A stretch of DNA of 64,000 nucleotides, taken from Histomonas meleagridis 2922-C6/04-290x (Eukaryota > Protista > Parabasalia). The notes beneath the pieces are model-generated. The model was not told the DNA's origin and did not search any database. It was given only the letters and a program-made list of their open reading frames with translations. The translations under genes were made by a program, and so were the position numbers. Location: the NCBI GenBank assembly GCA_020184695.1, contig JAANOX010000227.1, positions 62,001 through 126,000 on the forward strand, given 5' to 3'. Below, piece after piece: positions 24,569 through 60,900 of the stretch. Positions within the stretch are counted from its first letter, which is position 1, and each line of letters starts with the position of its first letter.

Positions 24569-26051
24569 TAATGTATAATATATAATGTAATGTATAATAT
24601 ATAATGTAATGTATAATATATAATGTAATGTATAATATATAATGTAATGTATAATGTATAATGGATAATATATAATGTAAAATGGATAATTAATAATAAC
24701 TAATGTATATCAACTATTTATATTATATATTACATTGTCTATTATGTATTGCATTGTCTATTATACATTAAATTATATATTATACATTATACATTACATT
24801 ATATATTATACATTATATATTATACATTATATATTATACATTATATATTATACATTATATATTATACATTATATATTATACATTATATATTATACATTAT
24901 ATATTATACATTATATATTATACATTATATATTATACATTATATATTATACATTATATATTATACATTATATATTATACATTATATATTATACATTATAT
25001 ATTATACATTATATATTATACATTATATATTATACATTATATATTATACATTATATATTATACATTATATATTATACATTATATATTATACATTATATAT
25101 TATACATTATATATTATACATTATACATTATACATTATACATTATACATTATACATTATACATTATACATTATACATTATACATTATACATTATATATTA
25201 TACATTATATATTATACATTATATATTATACATTATATATTATACATTATATATTATACATTATATATTATACATTATATATTATACATTATATATTATA
25301 CATTATACATTATACATTATACATTATACATTATACATTATACATTATACATTATACATTATATATTATACATTATATATTATACATTATATATTATACA
25401 TTATATATTATACATTATACATTATACATTATACATTATACATTATACATTATACATTATACATTATACATTATACATTATACATTATACATTATACATT
25501 ATACATTATACATTATACATTATACATTATACATTATACATTATACATTATACATTACATTATATATTATACATTATACATTACATTATATATTATACAT
25601 TATACATTATACATTATACATTATACATTATACATTATACATTACATTATACATTATACATTATACATTATACATTATACATTATACATTATACATTACA
25701 TTATATATTATACATTACATTATATATTATACATTATATATTATACATTATATATTATACATTATATATTATACATTACATTATACATTATACATTATAT
25801 ATTATACATTATATATTATACATTACATTATACATTATACATTATATATTATACATTACATTATACATTATATATTATACATTACATTATATATTATACA
25901 TTACAATGTCTAAAATACATTACATTATATATTATACATTACATTATATATTATACATTATATTATATATTATACATTACATTATATATTATACATTACA
26001 ATGTCTAAAATACATTACATTATATGTTATACATTACATTATATATTATAC
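24569..26051. repeat. (ATTATAC/ATTATAT)n 7-bp satellite with TACAT variants; short inverted block at 24569-24680
   Basis: About 1.3 kb of heptamer repeats from about 24772; the left block is the reverse complement of the same motif. Confidence 0.97.
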
Positions 26052-36684: not shown

Positions 36685-37015
36685 AATTTATGTTAAGAAA
36701 ATGCCACTTCTAAATATATTTTTAATAAAATTTATTCTTTTCTTAAAAAATGTTGTTTGACTTTAACTCGTTATGCAACATTGAAATTATCTAAGATAAA
36801 TTTTAATTGCAGTCACGGACAAGAAAAAATCCTCATCAGCTGAAAAACTCATTAAATTAAAATGGATCTCGTGTCTCAGGGTCAACAGATGTTTTTAATG
36901 AGTCGTTCCAAAGCCCTGTCTCATCCATCATTGAGTGTTCAATGGAAGAATGTTATTTTGAAAATAATTCATATCCAATAATAATTCATTAATATTGTAA
37001 TAAAAAAATCCAGAA

Positions 37016-37088
37016 GTACCACTGGCCCAATGGATAAGGCGTGTGCCTACGGAGCATGAGATTCCAGGTTCGAGTCCTGGGTGGTACA
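37016..37088 (+). tRNA. tRNA-Arg(ACG), copy 1
   Basis: Acceptor GTACCAC/GTGGTAC, anticodon loop CT-ACG-GA, T arm CCAGG-TTCGAGT-CCTGG, T7 terminator. Confidence 0.97.
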
Positions 37089-37129
37089 TTTTTTTGATTT
37101 TTTAGATGCAAGTATTTTTAAGTCGAGAA
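37073..37129 (+). repeat. Left copy of the 57-bp target-site duplication (tRNA 3' 16 nt + terminator + flank)
   Basis: Identical to 54949-55005. Confidence 0.93.
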
Positions 37130-37181
37130 AATGATACTACCGGAATCAGCACCCCTGATAACCTTATTAAGATTTCTTTTT

Positions 37182-37375
37182 GGTACTCTCCAAGCAAAAG
37201 GGAAAATTTGAATACCTTCCTCTCAAAAAGTGGAAATGCCTTTCAATTATGCGTGATTTTTTGAATAGCATTGAAAAATTTTCATTCAAAATATTTTTGT
37301 GAGAAAATATTCCTTCTCAAATTCGATTTCTATGTTCTACATTTTTTGACATAAAAATTTCTGAAAATTTATAAA
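37182..37375 (+). repeat. Left terminal inverted repeat of the 11-kb element
   Basis: Reverse complement of 47996-48189 at 185/194. Confidence 0.95.
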
Positions 37376-38822
37376 TTGCCATTGTATTTTTTAAATAATT
37401 TTAAATTATTCGATATTTTCAATTTTAATATGACAAATATGCACTGACACGCAACATTCTCAGATATAATATATTTATCGAACTCAATATTTATAATGAT
37501 AATATATATTAAATTCGTTTCCGAAATTCGGTCATAGGTATACTGGGAAGATATAAGAACTAGCCATTAAAAATACATAATATATGCACATAATTGAGGA
37601 TATTAATTAATATAAATATGAAATAATATTCATGATAAGTCAAGATAAATTTTTTTTCATTTTTAAAAGTGACAAATATCACTTTTGTATGGTTTATTTT
37701 CGTCGGTGCGCCGATGGTAAACGATATGACCAATAGATGCAAGATAAATGAGCAATAAATAAACATATTTCTTGATCAATTCATTGCAAATAAAGAAAAA
37801 AATACCAAAAAATATCATTAATCATTATTTGAAATAAAAATATATGAGGAGGGGGGTGGGGGTAAAAAAAGAACGACCCTTTTATCTCGACTTCTATTCA
37901 ATAAAAATTATTTTTAAATTATATCATATTTAAATATTCATTATTAAATCTAAATATGTGAGCATTATGTTCATCATGTCCAAATGCAATTGTTTTCAAT
38001 CATTAAATTTTTCTTTATAGACATTTAGAAATATTGCCAAATTGCATAATTATTGGTAGAGGAATGACATTAAATTCGATGAAGAAGTTATGTTTATATT
38101 AGATATATTAAATATACTATTAGTTAAAAAACCAATTTGTTACACTATCTATTGCATAATTCGAAGAATTGAGAATTTTCACCTTATTTAGAATATTTAT
38201 GTTCATTTGATTAATATTTGAAACTAATAATTTATCGTATTTCATAAAGAATATTGAAATATTATCAAGTTTTTTAAGCACAAAATATAATATCTTATAT
38301 ACTCAGTACCAAACAAATAAAGATCATGAAACTGGATTCTGCAATATATTTATTAATATATTACCACATATAAGTAAAAAAATGCAAACGAATTAGATAA
38401 ATCGAGAATAATAATAAGAGTAATTAAAGATTACATTAATATTTTATTTATTTTTTTAATATCATAATTTAAATTCCATTGAAAACAAAAAATCGGAAGA
38501 TATAATCAAGAATAAAAAAAATGTATATAAATATCTACAACAAAGAACAAATATAAAATATTATATAACGAGTTAAATATTACTAAAATACATCAGATAA
38601 TGAGATAACTCATTATTATAATAATTAATACAATGAACAACACATGTGTTGATAATTTAATTTATTATTGTTGATGATGCGAAATCATTTATTGTAAGTC
38701 ATAATAAATCAAAAAGATACAACAATTTTTATGCAACAAATTATTATCAAAAACCAATTTATCACTGAAATGATTCATTAATAAATTATGATTCATTATT
38801 GCATTAATGGAATAATCTTCTA

Positions 38823-40494
38823 TTATAATAATTCCAAGAACAGTGAAACTATGGCAATAACAATTCCTGTAATTGCACTTGGATGAAGCTTTGTACCATT
38901 ACTATGGCTCAATGGGCATACATCGCTTATTTTGTTACCCTTGGTAACATTGATCTCTGCAAAAGTGCTTTTAGAATATTCATTTGTTACATAAATAGTT
39001 GGACTATCAAATGTTGTATTATAACACGATGGTTCATTCTTACCATAGAAGCAAACAATTTCAAGACTCATGCATGAACTAAAAGCATAGTTATCTATCA
39101 CATTAATGTTCTCTGGAATGATAACTTTCTTAATGCTATTGCAATTGATAAATGCGCCTAATCCAATCGTTCTTACTGAGCTGGGAATATCAATACTAGA
39201 AATCAAAGAACAACCTTCAAATGCATATTCTTGGATTGCTAATATGGTTTTTTTGGAATTACAACATCACCTGATTTTTCCAGAAGGGCAAAAATATTAA
39301 TTTAGTAATATTTTTTTGTTATATACAATTCCGTCATTGTTATAATTGGAGTAATATACATTATTTAGTGAGATGGTTACAGATACTAAATTTGGACAAT
39401 TTTGAAATGCAAATAGACCAATTGAAACCACTGAGTCTGGAATATTGACATTGTGGAACAAACATCCATAAAACTGGAAGTCTTGTAATACTGTGATTGA
39501 ATTGGGAATACTTAAATTTGTCAACAAAGAACAATTAATGAACGAAAAAAGACACCAATTGATTTTTACAGAATTGGGGATATTTATATTTGTAATAAGA
39601 AAACAATCCTCAAATGCATAATCTTCAATTAATTGAACAGAACTAGGAATATTAACAATACCTTCTACTGCTGGTGGACATAATATTACTTTTTGATATG
39701 TTTTTTTATCATAAACAATTCCATCATTATTATAATTCGAATAGATTTCATTATTTTTCAGAGATTTTAATTGCCTTTAATTTTGTGCATGCATCAAATG
39801 CAGATTCATTAATTAGGGAAACTGAAGAAGAAATTTCAATTTGCTCTAAATTTAAACACCTATAAAACGCAAATTCTTGAATTTTTTCAACAGAATCTGG
39901 AATTATAACATTTGTTATCTGCCTGCAATCAGAAAAAAAGAGGAATATCCTATTGATTTTACAGAATTGGGGATATTTATATTTGTAATAAGAAAACAAT
40001 CCTCAAATGCATAATCTTCAATTAATTGAACAGAACTAGGAATATTGACAATACCTTCTACTGCTGATGGACATAATATTACTTTTGATATGTTTTTTTA
40101 TCATAAACAATTCCATCATTATTATAATTCGAATAGATTTCATTATTTTTCAGAGATTTTTAATTGCCTTTAATTTTGTGCATGCATCAAATGCAGATTC
40201 ATTAATTAAGGAAATTGATATAGGAATAATAAGCTGGTCCATAGAACAACCATAAAATGCATAATCTTTAATCGTTGTAACAGATTCACCGATTACTACA
40301 TTTGTTAATTTGCTCTGATTATAAAAAAAGCATGGCTATCAATCACAAATACATTGCTCCCAATTTGCAGTTTTGAAAAATGACCAATGGTTTCAATATC
40401 ATCTCGTGTAATAGTTGAAACATTAAAGACTTTAAGAGTATCATTTTCGAGAATAAAGTTACAGCATGTGAAAATAGGAAGAAGGTAAAAACAT
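38823..40494 (-). pseudogene. BspA-like LRR surface protein gene, frameshifted in this assembly, inside the 11-kb element
   Basis: Signal-like start at 40494; LRR_5 fragments (VIIPDSVEKIQEFAFYRC, IPSSVRTIGLGAFINC); TM-like C-terminus SAITGIVIAIVSLF; about 260-bp internal direct repeat with 394-bp offset (from 39558 and 39952). Confidence 0.8.
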
Positions 40495-40546
40495 GTATAA
40501 AAAAATAAATGCCATCTTTGGCAAATTTAAAAATTCAATTGTTCAA

Positions 40547-40942
40547 ATGTTTTTCTTGATCCCTATTATCATTGTTGCCAGACAATCAACAGAAAATAAT
40601 GAGGAAAACAGTGCTAAGCCAGGACTTTTAGTTAATGTTAAAGGAGATCTTGATTTCAACGAATTAATAGATCAAATCAGCAAAATAGTAGGTTTCTTGC
40701 TAACAGCAAAAAATGAAATTCCAACAAATGGAGGTGGTAGATTTATTACAGGTGTTGATTCCGGTAATGTTTATGCATTTTATTACCATCCGTCAAAGAG
40801 ACACAGAGTTTCATGTAGACCAGGACATGGCCAAAGAATTCAACCAAAAGATCCAGTATGGTTTGAGGCAAATGAATGGGCCTATGTTATTCTTAAATCA
40901 GCCTGGTATGGAGGTAATCGATGCTGGTATGATGATGAATAA
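40547..40942 (+). CDS. Secreted lactococcin-972-like bacteriocin-family protein
   Basis: Hydrophobic N-terminus MFFLIPIIIVA; C-terminal GGGRFITGV...VYAFYYHPSKRHRVS...ANEWAYV...GGNRCWY resembles the Lactococcin_972 family pattern, recognised by eye. The ORF track extends upstream to 40493. Confidence 0.62.
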   Translation: MFFLIPIIIVARQSTENNEENSAKPGLLVNVKGDLDFNELIDQISKIVGFLLTAKNEIPTNGGGRFITGVDSGNVYAFYYHPSKRHRVSCRPGHGQRIQPKDPVWFEANEWAYVILKSAWYGGNRCWYDDE

Positions 40943-43561
40943 ATCTAGATTAAGTGTAAGAACTTCAATCGATTTATTTAATTTTTAATAATTAAATAAT
41001 TTTTTAAATATATTTTAAAAAAATTTTTAATATTATTTTTATATTATTTAATGTTTTTTTATAATGTTTTTATGTTATTACCATATAATAATTTAGCTAT
41101 TTAAAAATATATTATTCGATTTTTTGATAAAAAAATGCCATTTTTTTGCTAAAAATGCCATTATAATCCAAAATTTCATCAAAATATTTGCATGTAGGAA
41201 TACAACAGATTATTTTTAAAATGTATATTGTTGATTGAAAACATGTGTTTTGATCAGAATTATTCTAATATTGAATAAAAAATATTATTTTTTTTTTTTT
41301 TTTTATGGAATTGTATGAGAAAATAATATAATGATAGCCTAACATAAATTTATGTTATGTACATGCATACAGCTTCATCAAATTTGTGTATTTTCACTTG
41401 TTTATTCATGCTTTTTTTTATTATCAAATGTTTTATCATGTTCATTCATGTTGTTCTATCTTATCTTGTGCTTATTCATGTTTTTTCTCATTATAAAACT
41501 TTTTTTCATATTATCTCATTTTGTATTAATAATTTTTTATGTTTGTTCACATAATTTCATATTTATTCGTGTTATATAATGTTTATAAATTAATTTTTGA
41601 ATGTTATCTCATGATTTTTCTATGTTATCTCATGTTATATCATATTTATTAATGTTTTTTTCATATTATCTCATGATTTAATATGTTGATTCATGTTTAT
41701 TCATGTTTTTCATTTTATCTGATATTTATTTATGATTTTTTTATGTTATCTCATGTTTATTCATTTATATTCTTTTTTTTTCTTGTCATAAAATGTTTAT
41801 TTATTAATTTTAATATTATCTCATGTTTGATTTGTTGTTCATTGTTTATTTTCAATGTATTATCTCCATGTTATTCATAATACATGTCATAATAACATAT
41901 AGTGAAATTTTTTATATTTTTCTATGAATTGTGTGACATTTTACACTTAATAATTCCATGAAAATCCATTTTGTTTATCAATATCAATAGATTTCAAGTT
42001 ATAACATTCGTCAAATGAAGTTCCATCAATGAAAATTACAGAATTAGATACTTATACTGTTGTTAATGCACTTTGTTCATTAAAAGAAAGTTCTTCTATT
42101 TCTTAAACAGTATCCCCTATAATTACTTATGTAAAATAATGATTAATAAATAGCAATTAATATATATAATAATTTATCATTTTTATGTTTCATTATGTTG
42201 TCTTCATTTGATTTTTGGTTTATTATATATTGTATATAATAGAAAAAGCAAATGAACAGGAAAAACTATATATATTTCATAAGAATATCAAATAACATAT
42301 GAAAAACACATTTGAACACCATAAATAACATAAGAATATGAATATTTACATTCGTAAACATATTGACTATGTAATTTACAATATATTATGAGGCTTGTTT
42401 TTATTGTAAGCTTTGCCGAATAATAACCCAATTTTTTGGGCAAGAAAAATAAATTATATATAAATAAAACTATAATATGCTGATGCATTAAATGTCAATA
42501 TACATATTCTACATAATAAGATAATATTTTAAAACTTTTTTCTTACTAACCAGAAATTAGGGTATTTAGATCAATTTATATTTACCCCCTATTCATATAT
42601 CAATAATATATATTTCGATTTTATGAATATATAAATATCTTATTTTTATCATAATATAATTGAATTTATATAAAACACCTTAAAGTTAATGTATCGATTT
42701 TTTTGTATAAGAAATTCTCTTAAATGATTATATTTTTTTAGATAATTTATGACTATTTACTCAAACAAGTGAAATAACTGCAGTTATAATGTGAAATAAA
42801 AAGGGTATTTTTCATCAAGTAGAGTTGCAAACATAAATTGTTATATAAAAATTAACATTGAGTTACGGATGAGAACCTTATTAGCTGACAACATAATTTA
42901 ATAACTTTCATACTTTAAATATAACATTAGACTTTCATTTGTTATAATATAAATAAAAAACTTCTTTCTAACTTTCATCAATATTTCTCAAAAATTCATT
43001 TGAATGTTGTACCATTTCATTTCTTCTAACAACAGTTAATTTATATGGGATCAGCTTTCGAACATATTCCATATAGTACAAAGCATACTTGAAAACTTTT
43101 AAATATATTTTATGTATTGCCTAATATTTAAATAATATGTTTTTTGTACTTGCATATGAATATTTTGGAAGGATCTATGTAAATGACTCAATTAAGTTAC
43201 TGTCGTCCATTTCATTAGTATATCGGAATAAGTATGATAAATTCACTTTTTTTGCATTTTTTACAAATCATTTTTACTAGATATCAATGATCATAATTTA
43301 TTCGATTACAAATATATTTAAACAAATTATTTTTTTATAAAAATTTAATTGGATTTAAATGATATATATAATCTTTAATTTAATGAGCTATTTATGAAAT
43401 ATTATATGAATTAATTGATTTTGCTGATTATAATATTTGATTAATATCGAATTAAACTAATAAATTAAATTTCTTTTTTTATGTATACGCTTTTATTTAT
43501 TATTCATATTAATAATAATTCAATATTGTATGCATTATGCGTTTAATATTTATTTGTTATT

Positions 43562-44521
43562 ATGAATTACAATCAGCCTCAACAATTATCTTTCCCGTTT
43601 ATCGATAATACTCTCTCTTATTTTTTTTTTTTTTTTAATGAAGACGCAGCTATTCAATTCGCATTACAGAATGGAGTTATTTATAATCAAATGATGTGTG
43701 AAGAATGTAATTTCTATATGCAGATCTACAGGGATTCTTCAAAAAGGATTTGGATACAAATGGATATGCACAAGATGCCACAAATCAAAAAGTATTTTAT
43801 ATGGAAGTATTTTTTACTCAGCAAAAATATCACTTTCTAAGATTTTTTATTTATTATATTGTTGGGTATATAAATATTCATGTAAAGATACTGCGAGAGA
43901 AGTAGGAGTGAGCAGAAACACAGTAACTTATTATTTTACTTTATTTAGAAATGCATGTGATGCATATGTTTTATCTTTAGAAGGTCTTGTTGTTGGCGGT
44001 CCTGATAAAACTGTTCAAATAGATGAAACTTTAATGTGTCGAAGAAAATATAATGTTGGACGATGTTTAAATCAAGTGTGGATCTTTGGGGGAATTTGTG
44101 TGGAAGATAGACAATTCTTTTGTCTTGTTGTACCTGATCGAACAAGAGAAACATTAGAAGAAGAGATTCGTAATCATATATTACCTGAAACAAAAATAAT
44201 TTCTGATTGCTGGAAAGCGTATGACTTTCTTGATGATGACAATGATTACGAGCATGAAACTGTTAATCATTCATGTAATTTTGTTGATCCTGAAACTAAA
44301 GCGCACACTCAAATGATAGAAAGACTTTGGAGGGAACTATTAATAAAAGATATGAAGGAATCCCAGAAAATAAAGTCAATGAACATATATCAGAGTTCAT
44401 GTGGAGATGGAATGTTATTCACAATAAGGATCAAATGTTTAGGGCCGCCGTTCAATTAATTGCAGACACAAAGTTTACAAAAGTAATTGATTGCGATGAA
44501 GAAGAAGAAAAGTTGGAATAA
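43562..44521 (+). pseudogene. Merlin/IS1595(ISXO2)-type DDE transposase with two frameshifts
   Basis: Zinc ribbon CEEC...WICTRC, VQIDET, WIFGG, ISDCWKAY, HETVNHS, HTQMIERLW and EFMWR; frameshifts near 43745 and 44340. Confidence 0.9.
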
Positions 44522-44589
44522 GTAAAAAAATCATATCTTCGATTGTTATGATCATTTTTATTTCTAGAAAATTGAGGATAGAAATATAA

Positions 44590-45140
44590 ATGATATTTTA
44601 TTATGTTATTTAAATATCGATTTGTGAAGATTTATGTTACAAATTTCGAAATTTCGAAAATTTAATTTTTTAAAAAAATATGTATATATTATCTTTATTT
44701 GATGACATATTTTATTATATTATTTAAATATTGATTTGTTTTAAATTTTTTTGTTACAAATTTTCGAAATTTTGAAAAATTTAATTTTTTTAAAAAAATC
44801 TGTATATATTATCTTTATTTGATAACATATCTTGTTATATTGTTTAGATTTTGTTTTTGTTTAAATTTTTTTGTTACAAATTTTCGAAAATTTTTGAAAA
44901 ATTTAATTTTTTTAAAAAAATCTGTATATATTATCTTTATTTGATAACATATCTTTTTATATTGTTTAGATTTTGTTTTGTTTAAATTTTTTGTTACAAA
45001 TTTCGAAATTTTGAAAATTTAATTTTTTAAAAATCTGTATATATTATCTTTATTTGATAACATATCTTGTTATATTGTTTAGATTTTTTTTTGTTTAAAT
45101 ATTTTGTTACAAATTTAGAAATTTTGAAAATTTAATTTTC
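44590..45140. repeat. About 113-120-bp tandem repeat, about 5 copies, just downstream of the transposase
   Basis: GTTACAAA anchor recurs at about 44636, 44753, 44873, 44993 and 45106. Confidence 0.9.
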
Positions 45141-47995
45141 GAAAAAGATCGTCATTAATAAATCCTATATCGTGGTAAACATTAATGTATTATATACACT
45201 TTAGTCCTATTAATTGTTTACATTAATTTCATATGTAAAAAATCTTCTCAATTTTTAAAAAAATCAAATAAATTCATTAATATAGCTCATTAATAAACTT
45301 GACATATGTTAAAAAAACTTCGATAAAATCTTATTCTATACATAAAAAATCGGCTTTTTCAGGAATAATTAAATTTATAAATTTTTTTCTGATTTCAGAT
45401 TTCAATCACATTTCTCATGTTTAGTAATGTATACATATTTAATCCCTCGAATTTTGTCCAACCAAACATATTGCAATCTTGAAAAATATAATAATTTTCG
45501 GTAAAATGATGTTCATTCAATTATTGAATGATAATTCAATATTTATACAGAAAATTCTGCGTAAAAAGCAGTTAATTCCAAACATTTATTCAAAAAGTGA
45601 ACATTTTTTTTGAAGAATTAATTATTACACACATTCATTTATGAGCGATAATATTATTTTATCTGGTAAATTTTTCATTTTTGTATGAAAAAAATAGTGA
45701 AATAATCTATTCTATTTTTAAAAAATGTTAGAATATTTTTTGAAATATAAATCTAATGAAATATATAATTTTTAATGACAAAAATTGATATAATTTTAAT
45801 TTGATAATAATCTTTTTTAAAATCTTACCAAAAACACACGGGGATTCAACTTATTTAAAGTCTTATATGTACATGACTGTATATCTTATAATTTTTTCTT
45901 AGTTAGCGAGAAAATAAGTGTATAAAGTTATTGTCATGATGCTAATTGATTTTTATGGCAAATATGAATTTATCGATCATTTGTTGATATGATTAAAATT
46001 AGTTCATTTTTTAATCATATTTATAATTAATAATCATTAATAAACAGTATATTAATCTTGAAATAGTTCAACATGAAAACATTTTTATTTTAGATCTTAA
46101 AAGTCTTCTTTGTAATTATAAATCACTTATATATATATATCCATTGAAATTTAACATTATTAAAGATTTTTATAGGTGATTTCACGAACCTTGATCCAGA
46201 AAATAATTGTAATTTACAATTTTCATAATTGTAGCATAAATATAATTTTCCGAAAAAATCATTTCTAAATATTTTATAGTTTCCCCTCTATAATAATGAA
46301 TGAAATCTACGCTCTCTTATATATTTTATTTCAAATTCATTAAGTACAATTACTTTTTATTACATTTCGAGTTACTACTATTTCTTATGCATAATATAAA
46401 GAATAAGTTAGGTATCATAATAATTCATATAATTATATTAAATTTATACATTTTGTTCATTGATAGATCAAGATAACTTAGAATATTTGAAAAAATTTCA
46501 TTATTTAAATCATAAGAGAGAGACTAAATTAAGGTAGAGAAGTCATAATTTATTATAATAAACAAATTAATATAATATTCATATTTAAAAAAAACATATA
46601 TACTCATTTTTATTAATTTAATTCATGCTTTGTTATATTTTTTAATTGACATGTATATTAAGTGTTTTTTTCAATGTTTTCCTATGTTTTTTTTTTTTTC
46701 CCCCCCCCCCCCCCAGTTCTTTATGTTATCTCAACTTTATTCATTTTTATTCTATATTTGATGATGCTATTTCATGCTTATCAAAAAATTAATATATTCC
46801 ATTCTTTTTTTATCTTGTTAAATTAAGCTTATTTATGCTTATTCATTTTAATTATGTGTTTTTCTCCTTGCATGTGGTATGAGTGTTATATGTGTTTATG
46901 TGCCGGATGATATATATTAAAGAAAATAGCTAGGAGATTTGCATAATACTTATTATATGATATTTATATTTAAATAATCTTGGAATAATATATTATTTCT
47001 CAAGGAAAATTTTAGTATTACCAAAATTGTTTGTAAAAACTAGTCTTTTACGATTATGGAATCGTAAATGGAGCTTTATAGATATTCATTAACATGTTAA
47101 TATTATTATAAATGATTAAAGGAATAAAAAAAAGCTAATAAAATTATAATTTTATATACAAATGTCATTAATAAATCTTGTTTTTTTATGAACACAGCCA
47201 AATAAGAAATGTTGAAATACCTAATTCTCTTTATTACAATAGAATAACTTATTTTATAGAATATTATTACATGAAATTATAATACCAAAATCAGCGATGT
47301 CAATTTCTCCAAAATATTTTTATCTCATATTGTATTATGTTCATATATGTTAAAACCATGCGATTTTTTTCGTGTTGTATTTCATTCGAATAATAGTAAG
47401 GAGGGATTTTTAATTATTCTATTTATTCACAATAAAGTAAGGACACTTAGTTTGAATAAACTTTATACAGTATTGAATCGAAAATTACTTTAAATGAATT
47501 CAAATAATATTGTTATTTCATTTGATCTATTATATCTTGTAGCTTATTCACTCATGATTCTTCATGTTTACTTATGTTAATTCAAATTCATTTGTGTTTG
47601 TATATATACCTACTCATGTTCATTAATGAATGCTATAGTTAATTCATGTTTATTTATTATTCTTTATGTTGTTTTTTTAATAAAAATCTTGACAATTGTT
47701 TTTAAAATGAAAAAATCTCAATATTAACTGAATATAAAGAAAAATTAATGAAACTTTTAATATATCATATAATTTTAATAAATGTGATAAAGATATTTTT
47801 CAACTATTTAATTTTAAGTGAAAATGATTATCTATAATAAAAAAAATTCGAATATTTTAATATTTAACAAAAAGCATTAATTATTATATATGTTTTTTGG
47901 TTTACAGATCAAAATTATGAATGTGTACTGATTTATCAACAAAGCAATATTTTTTTGGTGGCGACCGTTCAAAGTAAAAATCTATTTGGTGACAT

Positions 47996-48189
47996 TTTAT
48001 AAATTTTCAGAAATTTTTATGTCAAAAAATGTAGAACATAGAAATCAAATTTGAGAAGGAATATTTTCTCACAAAAATATTATGAATGGGAATTTTTCAA
48101 TGCTATTCAAAAAATCACGCATAATTGAAAGGCATTTCCACTTTTTGAAAGGAAGGTATTCAAATTCTCCCATTAGGTTGGAGAGTACC
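47996..48189 (-). repeat. Right terminal inverted repeat of the 11-kb element
   Basis: Reverse complement of 37182-37375 at 185/194. Confidence 0.95.
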
Positions 48190-48325
48190 TTCTTTTTGGA
48201 CGGAAAAAATTTTTTCGGAGATAAATAATTTCGAGATAATTTCTCCAGAAATCATCGATAGTCTATACAGAACACAGCAGGAACACCTCCAGAACGACCA
48301 CAACACATCTAGAGGTATCATTAGT

Positions 48326-51300
48326 TTGAACGGAGAAATTTCGAAAAATGTGATAAATTCACCCATCACAGAATTACTTCAATTTAGCACCTACAACCTT
48401 ATTCCACCACAAAACACATTCCCATGTTTGTTTTATCCACTTTGTCAACGAATTTTTTATACATTTTCAGAATGCATCAAACATGCATATATGGAAGAAG
48501 AGCATGAACCACAAGAAATCAACCAACTAAAACGTTTCTTACCTCACGAACTCACATTATACGCTTGTTTATATGAAAGATTCAAATTCCAAGTCCCAAA
48601 TATTATCAACAATTTAATACCATTTTTCATTTTATACTCATGAAGAAGGTTTTGTTATACGTAAATGTCCTTTACCAAATTGTAATTATTTTATTAAAAA
48701 AACCCTGATGATTTTTCGGCAGCATTTCGCCGATCACATAAACCAGTTAAAAATCCTAGATCAATCATTTGCCACTAACGGTTATATTTGGTCGATAATT
48801 ATTAGTCATGTTAAAATTCGTAACAAAATCCCTACAGTTAGAGAATTTCTTGGAATTCCTGATACAAATATTTTAATACCAAGAAATGTTATTAGTAACA
48901 ACTCTAACATTCCAATTTTAATTTTATTAAGAAACATTGATTTTAATTTTAATAACTCCCCACCTTGGTTAGGATTAATTAATAGAAACATGGGTTTAAC
49001 AGTTCCAGTTCTACCAATTCAATTTATAGATGGTGGTTTAATTATAGATAATATTGACTTAAACAATATCAATAATATTCCCCAAATTCCTCTGAATAAT
49101 GACCCTAGAGTCAAAGAAATTACAAATAATGGGGAACTAATCAACTGTGAAATATGTGATACGATTCCAATTATTGAAGAAGTAAGTGATGAGTTAATGA
49201 TTAGAAATGATAAAATAAATGAGTTAAGAAATAGATTATTATCTTTTATTCTACACATATTAGAGAATAACTTTAGAAACAATTCTGGAAACTATAATCA
49301 AGTTCATACAAATGAAGAAGAAGTTAAAAATCAAAATACCAGAAGTTTCTATTGAGCGTGAAATAATTCCTATTAAAATCCCGGAAACTAAAATTACATT
49401 ATTTAATCAAGAAATTAATATTCCTGCCTATTCTATGGCACAAGTGCCAGTTAATATAGAAATCCCTAATTATCAATTAATTCAACGTGACATAGAATAT
49501 CCCATAGATATACCGAATTATGTTAGAAATCCAACTACATTCGAAATAGGTATTCCAGACTATCATAAATATCAAGTACCAATTGAAAAACCAGAGTTTA
49601 ATATAGTTAAAAGTAAGATTGACGTCCCAGTTGATACACCTAATTTCGTATATAAACCTAAAGATATTTTAATACCTATCGAAAAGCCAAATTATCAATT
49701 AGTAGAAAGTAAAATTGATGTTCCAGTCGAAATCCCAAAGATAGATTTCTATGAAAATCGGATCAAAAATGGATATAGATGTCATGAAATATGATTTTAG
49801 AGATATTTCAGTTCCCATAGATATACCAAGACCTAATTTCAATATTATACCAAAACAAATCGACATTGAGATACCAGTTCCAAACTTTAGATTTAATAAT
49901 AATGTAAACTTACAACAACAACAACAAAATGATCAATTAACATATGAAGGGATTAATCAAGATATTCAAAATATTACTCAAAATTCAAATCATGATAATG
50001 AAAATAATGTAAATGTTACACAAGATACAAATAATAATAACAATAATGAAAGAAATAATCATGATAATGAAGAAAATAATAGAGAATTATTACACAAACC
50101 AGAAGATTTAATTGAAGAGTTAAGGAATGTGAACTCTGAAAAAGATTTAAAAGAAATAATCGATAAATGGACTTCTTATAATATTAATAATATTTCAGAT
50201 TGGATAGATGATAATAAACCCTTGGAAGAACATTATATTACAAACTTAATAGTTATTAAAAGGAAATGGCCAGGTGTGAATACATTTGTCTGTCCACATG
50301 CATGTGGTTTCGCAACACATTCTAATACATTATTAGATATACATCAAAGAGAAGTTCATAATAAAATATTAAAAGGGAATCAAATATTAGAAACAATTGG
50401 ATCAATTATTAATAAGAAAACATTTTGGAAAATTATCACATATGAAAGTAATGGTAATAAAAGGAAAACTTATCGGAAAACTTTATGGAATTGTCCTTGT
50501 CCAAGTTGTAAATATGTAGGTGACTTAAAAAAACAGGATTAGCTAATCATGTTCGAAAAGTTCATCCACAATACAACAAAGATAAGAACATTTATGGTTG
50601 GTTTTGGGCAATGATTTTACAATGGGTCAAGCATCCGTTGAAAAGGAACCCACCAACTATAAAGAAATTGTTCAAGTCCAAAAAGATTAAAGAATGTAAT
50701 TATTGCAGAGCCATTGGAACCTCAATAAATAATATAGGTTTACATGCTAAATCAATGCATGGTGCATCTAGAGTAGAAGGAAATCAAGGAAAATTTGAAG
50801 ATGCTATTGCTAAATCTTACATTAATAAAGAATTAACAGAAGATAAAATTAGATTTATCAAATCTAAATGTAAAGAGAATGAAGATGAAATGGAAAACAT
50901 TAGAGAAAGAATTAAAAAAGCTGAAGATGAACCTATCAATATACAACAACCAGTACAACAAAATCAAATAAATAATAATAATGATGATAATAATAATGAA
51001 GAAATAATTAATAGAAGAAGAAAAAGTGAAGAAAGACAAAGACTAAGAGATAGAAAAATGATTCAAAGAATTGAGAACAATATTATAATCAATCAACAAA
51101 TAGAAGAAGTTAATAATAATAATGAAGAAGAACAACAATCACAAAATCAAAATGAAGAAGAAGAAATTATTCCAAATATTATTATCATTAATAATAATAA
51201 TCAACCTAATAATTTAGAACAAGAAAATTTAGATAATTTATTAAATAAAGCAAAGAAATGAATCAAAAAATGTGAACGAGAAGAATCAAATGGAATCAGT

Positions 51301-54300
51301 GTACCTAAATGTACAGAGAAGATTAGAAGATCTTTAAGAAAACCTATAAGTAAATTATTAAAGAATAAAATTATTCCATTAATGAAGAAAATCAAAATTA
51401 AAAACAACTATCGAATTAATGATCAAAAATGGTTTATAATGGAAGTAATTATAGCAAAAATGATTATATCCATTAGAAAAACTATTCGAACAGTTTTAAA
51501 GATCCCAATTAACAAAATGTAAAGAAGACGACCAATTCTAAACAAAAACAATAATAACGAAGAAGAATTAAGAAGAGAAAGAATTAGTTATGAAGAAGAA
51601 AGACATATTACAAATCTCATTTCTAATATCGAGAAATATTTAGAATGAAATAATCGAGAACAAAATCAAAATATTTTAAATAGTATATCAATCATTAAAG
51701 ATAAATTAGTAGATATTTTACATAAATTAGATGATGATTTTATTAACAGAACATTCGGAGGAAGAAAAATTCAAGATATTAGATCTTTTATAAATGAAGA
51801 AGAAGAATTTCGAAATATGAAATTTAACTGGATTAAGAATACATTAGAAGATGAAATTGCTACCAGAAGTGGTATTTTAAGTGAAAAATATAAAGAAAAG
51901 ATTCAAAATTTATATCAAGAAGATTCTAGAAAATGTATTAATTGGCGTATCTGTAAAAATCCTACACCAGAATGTCCTTTAACTTTAAATCAATTTGAAG
52001 AATTCTTTAAAAATGAATGGAACTCTAAAATTGATTTTCATCCACCTAATAATGATTCTAAATGGAATTTAGATAATTGTTTTAAAAAAGAAGATAAAGA
52101 TTTATTTATTACTATGTTATTAGATAAAGATAGAATTAAAGAAGTCATTAGATCTAGACCAAATTTAAGTGCTCATGGTATCGACGGTATTTCTAACTCA
52201 ATTTGGAAATCTAATATTAATATTACATTCAAAATTATTAAATATATAGTTTCTTATATGATTTTATATGAAAGAATTTCAGAAAGTTGGAAATCATCAA
52301 AAACTATTTTATTATATAAGAAAGAAGCACCAGAAGAATTAAGATCTTGGAGACCAATTAGTATTTCTAATACTATATATCGAATTATCTTTTGTTTATT
52401 TTTAAAATGTATTCAAGATATCAATTATAAAATCAATATCATTAATAGAGTTCAAAAAGGATTTAAAGAAGGAATTAATGGAGCAGCAGAACATATTGAA
52501 ACAATTAATGAATTAATTTCTAATGCCAGAAGAAAGAAACAAAGTATTTATATTACAGCTTTAGATTTTACTAATGCTTTTGGTACAGTACCTCATGAAT
52601 TAATTACCTGGGCATTAAAAGCCAAAGGTTTTCCAGATAAGTTTATTGATATTATAAAAAATTCTTATAAGAATTCATACACGAAAATATTTTATAAAGG
52701 AAATAATTCTAGACCAATATTCGTCAAAAGAGGTGTAAAACAAGGATGTCCTTTATCACCTACATTATTTGATTTATGTTTAGAACCGCTATTAAAAGCA
52801 ATTCAAATTAAAAATAAAGATGATGGTATATTAATTGAAGACGAAATCAATAATGAAATACTTAGATTCAATATTCAAGCGTATGCAGACGATGTTATTT
52901 TAATGTCTAGTTCAGAAGAAGGTATGAATAATATGTTAAAGACAGTTGAAAAGTTTTGTAAATTTTCAGGAATGGAATTAGCAACTAAAAAATGTAAATC
53001 TCTATATTATACTTATACTGATAGAACAAGAAATACATTAAACATTAACTTTAATATTAACAATGAAATTATTCCACAAATTTCTTTATTTTCTTATATT
53101 GAAAATTTAGGAATCCCAATAGCTTGTAATAGAGCTATTAAGAAGAAACATTCTAGATTAATTATTAATGAAATAAAGAACCAAATTACTAAAATTATGG
53201 AATCTCCATTAAAGATTACTCAGAAGATAGATTGTATTAAAAGACTAATTACGCCAAAATTTGACTATATTCTATTAAATAGTGTTTGTCCGTTAAATGA
53301 ATTAAAAGAAATAGATAAATATATTAGAGGTTGGATTAATAAATTATGTAAATCTAAAGGTATTCCTATTAATTATTTTTATACGAATTGGAGATATGGA
53401 GGATTAGGTATGAAAAGTTTATATGAAAGATACCAAATTCTTACAATTAGAAATTACATTGCGATGAAATATTCTAAAGAAAATATTATTCGGAAATTTA
53501 CTAATCAAATGGAGAAAGATGAAATAGATTATAGAGGACTTATTAAAGATGGAGAAAGTCCTTATCTTAATTTTAGATTTGATGATCAAAACAATTTAAT
53601 GCAAACTAGAAGAAACAAAGAACATTGTTTATTTATTGAAACATTAAAAAGTTTATCAAACTTACAAATTATTTTTATTATTGACAAAAAAAATGAAAGT
53701 ATTAAATTAGGAGATTTTAAAGATGAGATAGTTGAACAAAATGTCGAATCAGACAAAATTCTAGAGCAATTGAACCAATTAATCTGTGTTAGACACAGAA
53801 ATGCTCTAATTTCATCTGATTTTAAAGGACATACGTTCAATACTCTCATTGATTCGAAGACTTCAAATTATTTCTTTACTCAATGCAAATACCCAATCAG
53901 TGATACTCTAGCAAAATTTGTAATATTAAGTAGAACCAATAATTTAAGCACTGGTGAAATATTACATAAAAATAAACCAGAAGTATTTGATGGTAAATGT
54001 CATAGATGTCATAGTAATTTAAATGATTCATTAATGCATAGATTAAATGGTTGTCATATAATTAAAAGTTGGTTTACACCTAGACATAATGCAATCTTAA
54101 AAGAAGTTATTAAAAGTATTAAAGAAAAAGATAGAGAAAATAAACTAATTATTAATTATGATAAACCTATTAAAAAGAATCAATTAAGATTACCAGAAAG
54201 ATCTAAAAGATTAAAACCAGATGCTTGGTTCTTCACAGATAATATATTAAATATTATTGAGGTTAATTGTCCTAATGGAAGTCTTAAAGATACAGATGAA

Positions 54301-54861
54301 GGTAAAATTAACTCATCAGTAATTAGAAGACAAGAAAAACTAGATAAATATAACAATCTAGTTGGAGATTGTAACAATACCTTCAATTGTACCACCAATA
54401 TTTATGTAATAATTGTCTCATCATTAGGTGCAATACCTAAAGAAACCTATAAAGATATTAAAATATTATTACATAACGACAAATATAAAGCAAAATTAAC
54501 AACATCCAAATGATGTTCAATGGTAGCTTTAAGAGAATCTCTTAAAATTTATCGAAAATGGGGTACATATAATATCAAGGATAATTTAACCAATGAAGAA
54601 AATATAGCAGAACAAATTGAAGAAGAAGTCGAACACAACGGTGACACGGATGATGGTTTCGACAATGATAACACTGACGAAGATCTGAACATTGAAGATG
54701 AAGATCTGAACATCGAAGATGAAGATTCGATTATTGAAGACGAAGATACGAATGAAGAAAATTTAGAAGATGAACAAGTACATGATACACACAGGACTCA
54801 TTTAACTCTTGAATATGGGGTCGGGTTCGAGAGTTTAGAAAGTAACGATGAATCACAATAA
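48326..54861 (+). pseudogene. Single long retrotransposon ORF (5 C2H2 fingers, Pro/Ile/Val-rich repeats, RT, CCHC knuckle, PD-(D/E)xK endonuclease) broken by about 4 frameshifts and 4 in-frame stops
   Basis: RT: WRPISISNTIYR, QKGF, LDFTNAFGTV, GVKQGCPLSP, YADD. Knuckle: CHRC..HRLNGC. RLE: RHN, KPDAW, IIEV. In-frame stops at 51259, 51520, 51646 and 54511. Confidence 0.92.
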
Positions 54862-55005: not shown

Positions 55006-55252
55006 GAATATTTTTTTTCGTTAGGTAATTTGATCAATAATTCTTGGCTTATATTTTTTTTAATTAGATTTAGTTGCAATAGTTAACAATGATTAATACT
55101 TTTAATTGAGTTTGATTAAGTATGCTTCTTTTTGAATGATGAGAAACTTTTTCAATGTGGATGATATTAATCGCAATAATGGAAATATACTATTTTAAGG
55201 TGAAGTATCAATTTATAGTACTTTCCCAATTTATAAAAAATAAAACTGAAAA

Positions 55253-55325
55253 GTACCACTGGCCCAATGGATAAGGCGTGTGCCTACGGAGCATGAGATT
55301 CCAGGTTCGAGTCCTGGGTGGTACA
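55253..55325 (+). tRNA. tRNA-Arg(ACG), copy 2
   Basis: Identical to 37016-37088; oligo-T terminator follows. Confidence 0.97.
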
Positions 55326-55371
55326 ATTTTTTTCATTTTTTGATGCGAAGTGTTTAATATCTTAAAATTTT

Positions 55372-56751
55372 GTACCACTGGAATCAACATCCCTGATAAC
55401 CTTATTAAGATTTCTTTTTGGTCGGAAAATTTTTTTTTCGGAGATAAATAATTTCGAGATAATTTCTCCTTGAATCATCGATACTCTATACAGAACACAA
55501 CAGGAACACCTCCAGAACGACCACAACACATCTAGATACCTCTAGAGGTATCATTAATTTTAACGGAGAATTTTTGAAAAATGTGATAAATTCACCCATC
55601 ACAGAATTACTTCAATTTAGCACCTACAACCTTATTCCACCACAAAACACATTCCCATGTTTGTTTTATCCACTTTGTCAACGAATTTTTTATACATTTT
55701 CAGAATGCATCAAACATGCATATATGGAAGAAGAGCATGAACCACAAGAAATCAACCAACTAAAACGTTTCTTACCTCACGAACTCACATTATACGCTTG
55801 TTTATATGAAAGATTCAAATTCCAAGTCCCAAATATTATCAACAATTTAATATCATTTTCGTTTCATTAAGAAACATCGATTTTGATTTTAACAACTTGC
55901 CACCTTGGTTAGGGCTAATTAATAAAAACATGGGTTTAGCAGTTCCAGTTCTACCAATTCAATTTATAAATGGTGACCTGATCAAAAATAATATTGACTT
56001 AAACAATATAAGTAATATTCCCCAAATCGATCTGAACAATGACCCTACAGTCAAGGAAATTACAAATAATGGGGAACTAATCAATTGTGAAATATGTGAT
56101 ACGATTCCAATTATTGAAGAAGTAAGTGATGAATTAATGACTAGAAATGATAAAATAAATGAGTTAAGAAATAGATTATTATCTTTTATTCTACACATAT
56201 TAGAGAATAACTTTAGAAACAATTCTGGAAACTATAATCAAGTTCATACAAATGAAGAAGAAGTTAAAATCAAAATACCAGAAGTTTCTATTGAGCGTGA
56301 AATAATTCCTATTAAAATCCCGGAAACTAAAATTACATTATTTAATCAAGAAATTAATATTCCTGCCTATTCTATGGCACAAGTGCCAGTTAATATAGAA
56401 ATCCCTAATTATCAATTAATTCAACGTGACATAGAATATCCCATAGATATACCGAATTATGTTAGAAATCCAACTACATTCGAAATAGGTATTCCAGACT
56501 ATCATAAATATCAAGTACCGATTGAAAAACCAAATTATCAATTAGTAGAGAGTAAAATCGATGTTCCAGTTGATACACCTAATTTCATATATAAACCAAA
56601 AGACATCCTAATACCTATTGAAAAACCAGAATATCAATTAGTGGAAAGTAAAATTGATGTCCCAGTTGAAACATCTAATTTTATATATGAATCGGAAGAC
56701 ATTTTAGTACCTATTGAAAGGCCAAACTATCACCTATTAGAGAGGAAATAA
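55372..56751 (+). mobile_element. 5' part of a second copy of the RLE retrotransposon (internal deletion of about 310 bp relative to copy 1)
   Basis: High similarity to 37135-37181 plus 48198-49740; ORFs 55574-55870 and 55897-56751 are near copies of the copy-1 ORFs. Confidence 0.92.
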
Positions 56752-57984
56752 AAAATGCATAACCAAAAATAACATCAAAATAGGGAAATTTTTTTGAAAT
56801 GCTTTTTGCAGGATTTTATTGAATTGGGTTTGTTTCAATATTTGATCTTGCTTGCATATTTTGCTTAACTTGTATTATTTGTATAGTGACGGTGCGTAAT
56901 TGACATTGTTGCCAACTGCTACATCCAGATTCTGAGCAATTCTAATTTGAAGATGAGTTTCGATATTCATTTTTTATCTATAGTTTCTGAACAAGTGCTT
57001 TTGTTATGATAAACCAATTTACAACATCTTCTTCATGTTCTTTTTTGCTTTGCAATTTCTTTTGGATGCTTATGCCTCTTAATTATTATAAGCAGGCCAG
57101 GGTGACTTTTATTCTTAAGAATAAAAATGTCATTTGCTTTCAAAATTCCCATACTTTGAATTTCAAAGTTATTTATATAAACATTCCTGATAATTTCATA
57201 GTGATTAAACGATGAGATGCTCTTTAATTTGCATCAACAAAGCTCTGTCTACATCTTTCATATCTTGATAAATCTTTTCGCGAAAATCTCTTTAGTCGCT
57301 TTTTATCGGGAAAAATTGAGTCCCATTCCGGTTTTGCTTTGTCTGATCAAAACCATTTGAAAAATTAATGTCACATTTTTTTGAAGAAAAGCACTCTGAA
57401 ATACTCAATAAATAATAGAAACAAAGACTTAAAATTGTTATTAATTTGGTATCATCATTTGAAATTTCATAGCATTCTCTGCCATATTTTTCATTATTTT
57501 TGTTGAAATAGGTTCCTTTGCATTTGAACTTTTTTATCCATGCATAACATTTATAAGACCTCGCATTAATTGTCTGAAACTTTGATCATGAACTGTAAAA
57601 TTATCGCATTTATCAATTATTCTGCACCTATATGAAAAGGCAAACACAAATTGACAAATGTATCCATAAGTTGTAGTAGGATGTTGACTCTTATAATATA
57701 CAATAAACGCACGTCTCTTTTTCGCAGCACATGGAAATGGATTTGGACCGGTCTCCAAATAAGTTGTTTCGTAAACATGCAATAGAGATTGATATGTTTT
57801 CTGTGTTACAAGTTATAACTTTTGAGAGCGAATGTTATTTTCTTTATTTAATTGTATTTTTTTTTTATCGCTCTCATAAAATTGAATAAAATGATAAGGT
57901 TCATTAATAATACAATATTTATAATATCAAAGTTATCGCAAAAAATATTTCACAGTTTTTGACATTTACAAATGAAGGTAAAAT

Positions 57985-60900
57985 CAAGACGTATCCGACT
58001 ACATAATTTTAAAATATTACTTAAAGATATTAATAACATATATATTACAATATATTGCATAATCAACAAGTCAATTTACTTCTCATGAAATCATACATAT
58101 TCAAAGATATTTATGTTTCAAAATGTGTTTACTATCAAAATTAAAAAGTTGAAACGACAATTTTATTTTGACCAATTAATGATTGAAAATGTGATAATGC
58201 TTAACGGTCGTTAAAGTGCTATTTTTCTTCATTTTATGAAGAAACTGTGTTATTATTAATTTTTTAATTACAAAACACAGTTTAGAAAAGCTAAAACGAA
58301 TAAACTCAAGCATAAAAGCTACCTGGATGGGATGAATTAATTTATTGAAAGGGTTTTGCGGAAGTAGCATATCTATTTCTGATATTTCTACCATATTCTT
58401 CATTCACACGATACTGTGCAGCATTAAGCGTCCAATGTTTCTTGGTTTCAGTTAATTCATTATAATTTTCTTTCTCAAGTAATTCTTTTTCCAAAGAATT
58501 AATATCGGAATATATTGGTTTCATCAAAAACCTATATATTTCGGTGTCAAAAGATCCTAAAAGTTGAACCTGATGAAACAAACTTTCTACAAAATCTCTG
58601 CATTTCAAAATTTCATCATTGTCAAATGAAATAATTCCTGATTCTACTACAGTAGTAGAGCGGATTCTAGCCTCCTTCTATGATTTGCATCATCAAAGTT
58701 AGTGTCTTTTCGATATGTATCAATAAATTGTATCTTATTAATGGCTGACCTAATAGCATCCATTGTTTGACAATTTTCGGCATTTCTTCTTATTCTCACA
58801 AAGAAATGTTCAGATAAAATTGATCCAACACGAGATAAAGGAAATGTGTCAGGTATTGATGTTAATGCTTTGATCATGCATGAAAAGAAATTTGCATAAT
58901 CAATGCATAAGATGGGACTTAAGATCATCTTGGAAATTGAAGATTTTGTTTTTGGATCCTTTTTACATTCATCTAAGAACATTTTATAGAAGACCACAAT
59001 AAATAAGCCAATATAACACATTTGACATCTTTTAAACCTTGTAAGATGCTTGCTTGCCGTCACACTTCTAGCCAATACACCAACCCATAAATAAAGAATT
59101 ACTGAATTATTTCCAGATTTGGATGCTTTTCTCAATGTTTTCCATCGAAGAAGTGCTGACGGATAATAATCATCCATACTCTGCAATGACCCATGTCTAA
59201 AGATACAATTTGGCAACGTTTTGTCAATCTGCTGAAGTGTACCTTAAGAAACACAATGAGATGAGTTTATATAATCTGGTTTGAGATATGAACTTTTGTT
59301 ATTTATCATTGCTTTTCTTAGGCGTTTTAAGCAATGATATGCATCATTTGAATACATCACTTCTTCGCTTGAAATTTCATCAAGATTTATTATGTTATTA
59401 TTCCATAGTGATGTAATTCTTTTATATTGCTTGTCGAAATTGTTTCTATAGCATTTATCCCCATCACTTCCAATAAATTTTATCTTCATTCCTTTTTTTT
59501 TTAAGTGATTGATAATATAATCAAGATCATTTCTGATATATTCTGTAGCAGATCCGGAGTTGGAAAATTTTATATAAATAGGATAAGACCTTTTTGGTGA
59601 CAATGGACATATTAATATGACAAAGATATGAGTAACAATCATTTTTCGATCTAATAACTCATTCCAAAGATTGCAATATAATTCACGATCTTCTTTGTAC
59701 TCTATTGGTTCCCTTGGAAGACTAATTTGTTCAATTGTTACTCTAACTTCACCATCCGAAGTTATTGTTAAATTTTCGTCTACTTTTGCAGCATCAATAC
59801 TTATTGTATAGAACTCATCACTCGAAAGGTGAAGCCTATTGGCCCAAAATTGAAAAATATTATCAACTTGATCTAAACTTTCTAAATTATTCCATTTTGG
59901 AATGCTTTTCTCATTTTTAACCCATTGATCAACAGTACTTTGACTCGGTCCATTTAGATAATCTTTCATCATCGCGAACGCTTTTCTGCTGTACATCATG
60001 AGTCTGACCCAAAATGCCTTGCTAGATTGTGAATACCTTTTGCCATTCTTTTTCCTAAAATTCTTTTCAGCTTCATTCAAGATATCATCAAATTCATTTA
60101 GAAAAATGAATTTGTTTTCCCGCAACTTTTTCTCGTTAATGTTGGAGCATGTTTTTAAAGTTCTGATCTTACGTGCATAAATAAGTTGCTGTCCTTTTAA
60201 TTTCCTTCTATTTCTGATATTATTCCATATAACGAGCTGTTTTGAAATATTTTTGCTATTGTCAAAATTATCATTGTTTGTTTTTCATCGTTATTTGAAA
60301 CAAAAATTAAAGGAGACTTGTCAATTATTTCATTATTTGCGATTTCTCGCGTAATAATTTTATTTTTGGATTTTTGTTTCGTTTCATATGAATCTCTGAT
60401 TCTGAACAGCTCCCTTCTGCAACCTTCACATGTTCTTAATGGAAGAATCGAACAAACCTTGTCAAAGCAACCAAATTTCACCCAACATGTCACAAGCAAG
60501 AGTTTTTCTTCTTTTGACCAAGAATTTTTCACAGTTGGGACAAGAAGGCCTGGACTATTCAATGCACAATCAAGAATTTCATTTGTTTGCCTAAGATCTA
60601 AACCCATAAAAACGAAAATTTGTGATAAATGATTAAATGTAATTTGCTGTTTTAGGAAAAGAAAATAAAGAAATTCAATCTCAATTTTGATTTCGTCTTC
60701 GTAGATATTCCAATCTGGAACAAAATTGTTTAGGAGATACCGAATTAGAATTTCTTCAGGCTGACACATGACCATAATGTCAAAACCACCAAAACCGTTA
60801 TCATTCTGAATTTGTCCTATCGTGGGCAACTCGATTCAATTTTTTGACTTTTTGATAAACCCTAAGCTTCTATCGTCGCCATTAAGTTTTCATTTAGCCG

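Follow-up and report, generated by a model that had tools for sequence, protein, structure and literature searches.

Merlin transposons are usually regarded as small, spanning a few kilobases and carrying a transposase gene only. The superfamily (Feschotte 2004, as summarised in PMC8101967) is defined by GG termini, target-site duplications (TSDs) of 8-9 bp and inverted repeats of 24-462 bp, and internal tandem repeats have been reported for some of its families (PMC8101967). A 2021 survey of 24 metamonad genomes detected Merlin only in Preaxostyla and none in Parabasalia (PMC8101967), and no paper describing Merlin in Histomonas was found in the literature searched. Here we analyse a 64,000-nucleotide stretch of the genome of the parabasalid Histomonas meleagridis 2922-C6/04-290x (GenBank assembly GCA_020184695.1, contig JAANOX010000227.1, positions 62,001 to 126,000 of the forward strand; hereafter the window), in which an element of 11,008 bp at 37182-48189 lies between 200-nt terminal inverted repeats (TIRs) that are 95% complementary. 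The element is a large, gene-carrying Merlin, new to a phylum for which that literature holds no report of the superfamily. We put at about 0.85 the probability that it represents the long form of a Merlin (IS1595/IS1016-related) family with many copies, that its cargo module was copied together with the ends to at least five loci, and that it is mobilised in trans.

Some bacterial IS1595 members reportedly carry passenger genes without a role in transposition between their ends (Siguier, Gagnevin and Chandler are said to have described this in 2009). Those members share the transposase family and the 8-bp duplications with the Histomonas element; they are, however, prokaryotic insertion sequences of a few kilobases, whereas the Histomonas element resides in a eukaryote, has ends of 200 bp and carries a gene pair of eukaryotic style. 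The Pack-MULEs of plants, which usually carry gene fragments, are likewise non-autonomous elements with intact ends that amplify host-like gene sequence, but they belong to Mutator rather than Merlin, and the Histomonas element holds at least one complete small gene in an association that may be old. Fungal Starships also move accessory genes relevant to the interaction with host or environment; they are 20-700 kb long and are moved by a tyrosine recombinase. The initial annotation of the window had drawn a loose analogy with Starships, which stands as far as the movement of accessory genes is concerned, but not beyond it: the element is 11 kb long with TIRs and an 8-bp TSD, its DDE transposase is the only mobility gene, no ORF (open reading frame) for a tyrosine-recombinase 'captain' was found in it, and it is not a member of that group. 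One of the cargo genes can be compared with the AMP-Lcn972 genes of Trichomonas, which belong to an antibacterial toolkit obtained by lateral transfer; bacteria induce these genes, and their products appear toxic to Escherichia coli upon expression (PMC12612818). Two H. meleagridis homologues are given in Table S2 of that paper, in which transposons go unmentioned (0 occurrences of 'transpos'; PMC12612818).

The element interrupts a repeat that bears a reverse transcriptase (RT) gene, and the features that define its borders are as follows.

37182-37381, plus strand: left TIR, 200 nt, starting GGTACTCTCC.
47990-48189, minus strand: right TIR, 200 nt, final letters GGAGAGTACC.
37174-37181: left copy of the TSD, TTCTTTTT, 8 bp, single at the empty site.
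48190-48197: right copy of the TSD, TTCTTTTT, 8 bp, a perfect match to the left copy.
36978-37181 (first ~200 bp) and 48190-54677, plus strand: interrupted, RT-bearing host repeat.
55407-55429, plus strand: empty target site in a paralogous copy of the host repeat.

The RT ORF of the host repeat (51817-54513) matches RVT_1 with an E-value of 2.4e-34, and the 5' region of the repeat occurs at no fewer than seven genomic places. Its paralogue at 55215-61758 preserves the site without the element: the 23-mer AAGATTTCTTTTTGGTCGGAAAA, which holds one TTCTTTTT, was found once, at 55407-55429, with 0 occurrences expected by chance. When the flanks of the element were fused at a single TTCTTTTT, the alignment to the paralogous repeat ran unbroken across the junction, with 87.5% identity over ~530 columns. 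The initial annotation had described GG-initiated TIRs of 194 bp with 9 mismatches, essentially the same as those measured here, together with an 8-bp TSD, an insertion into the 5' part of a retrotransposon and the uninterrupted sequence in a second copy, all of which our analysis recovers. At the expected position of the RT in this second copy (58647-60829, minus strand) there is an ORF with a P-element-transposase helix-turn-helix domain (PF12017, E = 7e-8) and another that is weakly Myb-like, which means that this copy, too, has suffered an interruption or a rearrangement.

The left TIR arm matches at least 40 ends in the genome, and 20 loci retrieved with it were each compared with the window element. 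Below, Cn denotes contigs of the window's assembly, the window lying on C227, and Lnnn denotes retrieved loci or contigs. The window's assembly, of an attenuated strain, comprises 43,133,364 bp in 281 contigs and was built from nanopore and Illumina data (PMC8529796). A kelch protein encoded in the window has a parabasalid cluster as its closest match. Loci L052 and L053 come from a second assembly, GCA_020186115.1, of a virulent strain, and L053 is the orthologue there of the C205 locus (L033). Three regions of the window's assembly are known through coordinates only: the fragment on C238, the right end of the C205 copy, and C273:67.7-70.7 kb. Perfect and mutually different 8-bp TSDs flank eight of the ten complete elements:

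C227 (the window copy): 11,008 bp, TSD TTCTTTTT.
C276: 11.2 kb, TSD TGCAGTTG.
C69: 10.8 kb, TSD CCATCTTG.
C273: 7.3 kb, TSD TCATTTTG.
C261: 6.8 kb, TSD TAGAATAA.
C250: 7.1 kb, TSD ATTACAAA.
C117: 7.3 kb, TSD AAGGGCGG.
C231: 8.8 kb, TSD AACATGTC.

Homology between copies ends exactly at the GG...CC termini, beyond which the flanks are unrelated. Because homology stops there and eight distinct, perfect TSDs are present, the copies arose by transposition rather than segmental duplication, and the family has transposed repeatedly, making 8-bp duplications. It is extremely unlikely that the copies are instead products of segmental duplication or an artefact of assembly, an explanation that could draw on the 20% duplication level reported for the strain assemblies of H. 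meleagridis (PMC8529796), on the lack of TSDs at L052 and L053, and on repeat interiors that differ between the strain assemblies. Besides the abrupt end of homology and the eight TSDs, it is contradicted by the precise empty site at 55407-55429 and by the finding that the copies have no flanks beyond the termini in common.

The claim that the insertion in the window is recent stands in part. The mismatches between the TIRs are mostly common to other copies and have no dating value; however, the left TIR is 100% identical to the left ends on C276, C205 and C69, which argues for recency. Nearly all recovered copies have GGTACTCTCC at their ends, and three degenerate ends start GGCACT, AGTACT or GTTACT. 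Positions 11-21 of the ends occur in two versions, AAGCAAAAGGG and AACCTAATGGG, whose distribution between left and right varies by copy: in some copies the two ends agree, and in one copy the versions are swapped. The pattern suggests exchange between ends or between copies.

Between its TIRs, the element is organised as follows.

37382-37937: left arm, common to the long and short forms of the family; breakpoint relative to the short form after ...TTTAAATAT.
37938-42219: cargo module, long form only, 4,282 bp; ~900 bp of the short form stand in its place.
38823-40494, minus strand: gene for a BspA-like surface protein with leucine-rich repeats; internal repeats of 393 bp, hydrophobic segment at the C-terminus.
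40547-40942, plus strand: lactococcin-972-family gene, 131 aa from the annotated start, its ORF reaching upstream to 40493; intact in the window.
41590-41830: short, AT-rich tandem repeats of low complexity, within the cargo module.
42220-43276: core segment upstream of the transposase, common to the short form, where part of it recurs as an inverted duplicate of ~490 bp.
43562-44497, plus strand: IS1595/Merlin-type DDE transposase gene, frameshifted, with the DDE residues kept in the central ORF.
44631-45139: tandem repeat with a unit of 113-120 bp, 4.3 copies, directly 3' of the transposase.
45140-47989: AT-rich right arm, in which no ORF reaches 70 aa, 90-96% conserved among family copies.

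In the transposase gene, the ORF at 43698-44459 contains an IS1595 DDE domain (PF12762, E = 4.6e-11), and the motifs QIDET, SDCWKAY and IERLW can be recognised by eye in the central ORF. The gene matches the intact protein of the family in three frames, with breaks near 43737-43786 and near 44339, in agreement with the frameshifts noted earlier near 43745 and at about 44340; its C-terminal ~20 aa are unmatched. The only intact transposase ORF of the family belongs to a divergent member on C15 (C15:33999-34994, corresponding to L043:5200-6198; 332 aa; PF12762, E = 6e-17), and its residues D154, D214 and E252 are invariant in an alignment with 11 relatives. Among named proteins, it is closest to IS1595-domain proteins of animals and a microsporidian; closer unnamed relatives, at 45-79% identity, come from metagenomes. 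The assignment to Merlin made in the initial annotation is thus borne out by the IS1595 DDE domain, the conserved DDE triad, the GG termini and the 8-bp TSDs. The family has all the defining Merlin features listed in PMC8101967, with a DDE_Tnp_IS1595 transposase, TIRs that start with GG and fall within the 24-462 bp range, and 8-bp TSDs, but at 7-11 kb and with extra protein genes it exceeds in size the simple single-transposase layout of that survey.

The window copy has at least two frame breaks in its transposase gene (assembly errors are possible) and is therefore non-autonomous. Since the window copy is frameshifted and the family's intact ORF is found only on C15, the long form, including the window copy, most likely depends on mobilisation in trans, by an intact transposase of the family. 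We envisage that the DDE transposase would recognise the ~200-bp GG-terminated inverted repeats, excise the element and paste it at a new site, leaving an 8-bp duplication, the cut-and-paste chemistry being presumed from the family. The window copy has inserted into the 5' part of the RT-bearing repeat.

Other loci illustrate the diversity of such elements in this genome. At least 82 matches to the Merlin transposase were obtained genome-wide, and several of them are open ORFs at 28-41% identity (for example, C52:140319-141161, C250:2692-3531 and C139:2918-3712), which indicates that several distinct Merlin lineages are present. Two members of the family, L043 (C15:28800-38799) and L040 (on C54), have different contents between the same kind of ends, among them a nested Tc1/mariner-type DDE_3 transposase, a DDE_1 transposase fragment and ORFs with signal-peptide-like or transmembrane-like segments. 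ORFs for Pox_A32-type packaging ATPases lie beside family ends at L052:19076-19976 (PF04665, E = 2.4e-9) and L048:8167-8634 (E = 2.4e-5), which places one long copy or more within or next to an endogenous element of virus-like character.

The family comprises two main forms, a short one of ~7 kb (C273, C261, C250, C117 and C3) and a long one of ~11 kb. The short form has the window segments 37182-37937, 42220-43276 and 43277-48189 at 90-97% identity, and the window copy itself is without ~400 bp at 43276/43277 that the other long and short copies compared have, where that stretch is resolved. The cargo module is found at 96-98% identity between the same ends on C205, C69, C276 and C187, hence with the window at no fewer than five loci of this assembly, and again in L052 and L053; it is present in part at C227:132.5 kb, and a fragment lies on C238. 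C276 and C69 hold the other long copies of the window's assembly with both ends recovered, each flanked by its own perfect 8-bp TSD. Because the module lies between the ends, it has multiplied along with the element, to at least five loci. Every component named in the initial annotation (an IS1595/Merlin transposase, tandem repeats of about 120 bp, a BspA-like gene and a bacteriocin-like gene) is present, and the question it had raised of whether the cargo co-occurs with these TIRs elsewhere is answered in its favour by the four further loci and the two virulent-strain copies. Its description of a giant cargo transposon is right in that cargo travels between the ends, but the cargo amounts to a 4.3-kb module, and the basic element is already ~7 kb long.

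It is conceivable that the element is a nest of two transposons, in which a separate mobile element brought the cargo into a 7-kb Merlin. Nesting is common here, as shown by the Tc1/mariner-type DDE_3 ORF in the C15 element and the DDE_1 ORF within the span of the C54 element. We nevertheless consider this origin very unlikely. The breakpoints of the module are clean, with neither inverted repeats nor duplications at its borders; the module replaces ~900 bp instead of adding to the element; it contains no second transposase; and a search of the genome with the module did not find free-standing copies with ends and TSDs of their own. Within the element, only short, AT-rich inverted-repeat pairs at chance level were detected around the transposase or the module, and the transposase has no closer TIR pair of its own, an outcome in favour of the initial annotation, which such a pair would have refuted; in the short, cargo-less form the transposase lies between the same ends.

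A more serious alternative is that the short 7-kb form is original and that the 4.3-kb module was recently captured from a host locus in the manner of Pack-type elements. The transposase region gives a tree in which the long copies group together (support 98/95), with the short copies as their sister group (87/90) and more divergent members outside the two. The terminal branches are 0-0.011 for the long copies vs 0.012-0.026 for the short ones, which fits a more recent burst of the long form and speaks for capture, as does the resemblance of the cargo BspA gene to many host BspA paralogues (64-75% DNA identity). On the other hand, the two forms are sisters in the tree, so that the direction of change is not polarised, and no transposon-free donor locus for the module was found in the genome. 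The sole other cargo-like locus, C273:67.7-70.0 kb, has 84-92% identity and is without the arms of the element; it is directly followed by a fragment of the family transposase (C273:70006-70731), which speaks against it as a host donor. Furthermore, BspA-like remnants occur at the equivalent position and in the same orientation in a subfamily of ~85% identity (C231 and C79), and a lineage diverged by ~70% (the right part of L034) has the same order of segments. The ~900 bp of the short form at the position of the module include an inverted duplicate, ~490 bp long, of a neighbouring segment, which looks like a scar of rearrangement. We therefore regard recent capture as rather doubtful. As judged from these comparisons, the evidence leans toward an old module that has since been lost from the short form, and the module may be ancestral to the family. 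Compared with Pack-type elements, then, cargo has been amplified between the ends, but no host donor locus was found and the cargo is possibly ancestral.

The two cargo genes lie head to head on opposite strands, with start codons 52 bp apart. In the BspA-like gene, LRR_5 (PF13306) was detected in three minus-strand ORF fragments (38823-39206, 39297-39527 and 39751-39999) with E-values of 1e-11 to 1e-15. A first break in the frame comes shortly after the start codon, others follow, and this gene looks decayed. Calling it a pseudogene is subject to the accuracy of the assembly, which is considered below.

The lactococcin-972-family gene is intact in the window. Its 131-aa product has a hydrophobic N-terminus followed by a beta-sandwich domain. 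On its own, the ORF at 40493-40942 scores 22.9 bits against Lactococcin_972 (PF09683), for which the cut-off is 22. A word-based homologue search with the ORF recovered only the ORF itself; an exhaustive HMMER search yielded 27 relatives, and PF09683 was found in all ten of those tested. The profile of these relatives matches the Protein Data Bank (PDB) entries 2lgn (Lactococcin 972; E = 1.5e-7) and 9hkj (Formosin D; E = 4.2e-5). An AF2 model of the domain is a confidently predicted beta-sandwich (pLDDT 88-97), and Foldseek returned TM-scores by target of 0.79 to 2lgn and 0.66 to 9hkj, with probability 1.00 for both and E-values (2e-2 and 2e-3, respectively) that are weak because the domain is small. 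Two histidines are invariant among the relatives, as described for metamonad homologues (PMC12612818). With a short protein, a C-terminal lactococcin-972 domain, these histidines and a signal-peptide-like N-terminal extension, the product resembles AMP-Lcn972 of Trichomonas; the difference is that no transposon link was reported there, whereas every homologue detected in the Histomonas genome sits in this Merlin family and has been multiplied by it. The more distant homologues lie on contigs of only 1.2-1.7 kb, too short to reveal linkage to a transposon. A Logan contig of 2071 bp (L054), from a run that lies apart from the retrieved assembly records (ERR15966324), covers window positions 40179-42263 at 97.6% identity and encodes an identical 131-aa protein. 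The peptide would be secreted and would target bacteria.

Several observations weigh against the reading proposed above. The transposase is disrupted in every long and short copy, at different places in each. The BspA gene is broken in all copies examined: ~550 aa would be expected, but the longest piece, the N-terminal ORF of L052 (LRR_5, E = 3.8e-31), has 199 aa. Stops or frameshifts interrupt the lactococcin-972 ORF in three of five copies of the window's assembly (C69, C187 and C276), and its amino acid identity is 84-92% on C69 and C205 and 73% on C187, despite 96-98% identity at the DNA level. The sequence was located in four DNA runs of one study, probably the one that produced the assembly, with no RNA run among those listed; in candidate RNA runs, nearly all of the words sampled are missing. 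In addition, no matching TSD was found at the long copies L052 and L053, and the base-level sequence of the repeat copies is unreliable. A reciprocal exchange between known copies was tried as an explanation for the missing TSDs and did not yield a definite arrangement; the right-end flank of L052 and the flank of the C3 copy have the octamer ATAATTAC in common, with a 156-bp match nearby.

The unreliability is apparent from the C205 copy and its virulent-strain orthologue, which show 0 differences in 602 bp of flank and 164 inside the element (117 substitutions and 47 indels, 39 of the latter in homopolymers). Both strains derive from one clone. The pattern points to cross-talk among repeat copies during assembly or polishing, or possibly to gene conversion, and, because the interiors differ while the flank is identical, individual frameshifts and pseudogene calls are provisional.

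Another possibility is that the element is real and mobile but that its two cargo genes, BspA and lactococcin-972, are dead weight, neutral passengers in decay that at present serve neither the parasite nor the element. The pieces of BspA in all copies, the stops and divergence of the lactococcin-972 ORF, a remnant in L034 that is unrecognisable at the protein level and the lack of an RNA run among the runs listed with the sequence all favour this possibility, to which we assign somewhat less than an even chance. Against it, two virulent-strain copies encode the 131-aa product of the window without a single difference, its fold is predicted with confidence, and the Trichomonas homologues are induced by bacteria and apparently toxic to E. 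coli (PMC12612818); moreover, many of the apparent breaks may be homopolymer errors of the long-read assembly. We favour a long-form Merlin in which only the peptide gene, whose frame is open in the window and in several other copies, probably has the potential to function, and in which at most this gene would still do so.

Apart from the element, the window holds two large satellite arrays, at 19400-22500 and 24560-26010. Units of ~20, 147 and 170-267 bp make up one of them, and the other is a very AT-rich array of a 14-bp unit, with a GC content of 11-14% and a strongly negative GC skew.

Our results indicate present or recent activity of a Merlin family of 7-11 kb in a parasite of importance to poultry. 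The published repeat annotation of the genome, which used a Trichomonas library and assigned 0.23% of the sequence to DNA transposons, misses large families. Repeat interiors in the two strain assemblies cannot be relied on base by base, which bears on comparisons between the virulent and attenuated strains. The long form has multiplied a gene pair of just the kinds to which a role in contact with host cells (BspA) or with bacteria (the lactococcin-972-like peptide) is ascribed. The recently described antibacterial toolkit that trichomonads gained by lateral transfer is hereby linked to a specific mobile carrier, which also offers a mechanism for change in the copy number of such genes. One could speculate further that this Merlin lineage has long been a vehicle for a BspA-type surface-protein gene and for AMP-Lcn972, an antibacterial-peptide gene of bacterial origin, in gut parabasalids, setting their copy number in Histomonas and possibly moving them between co-resident protists. 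We consider this broader scenario unlikely, but if it were true, a DNA transposon would be spreading some of the antibacterial toolkit that metamonads have gained by lateral transfer.

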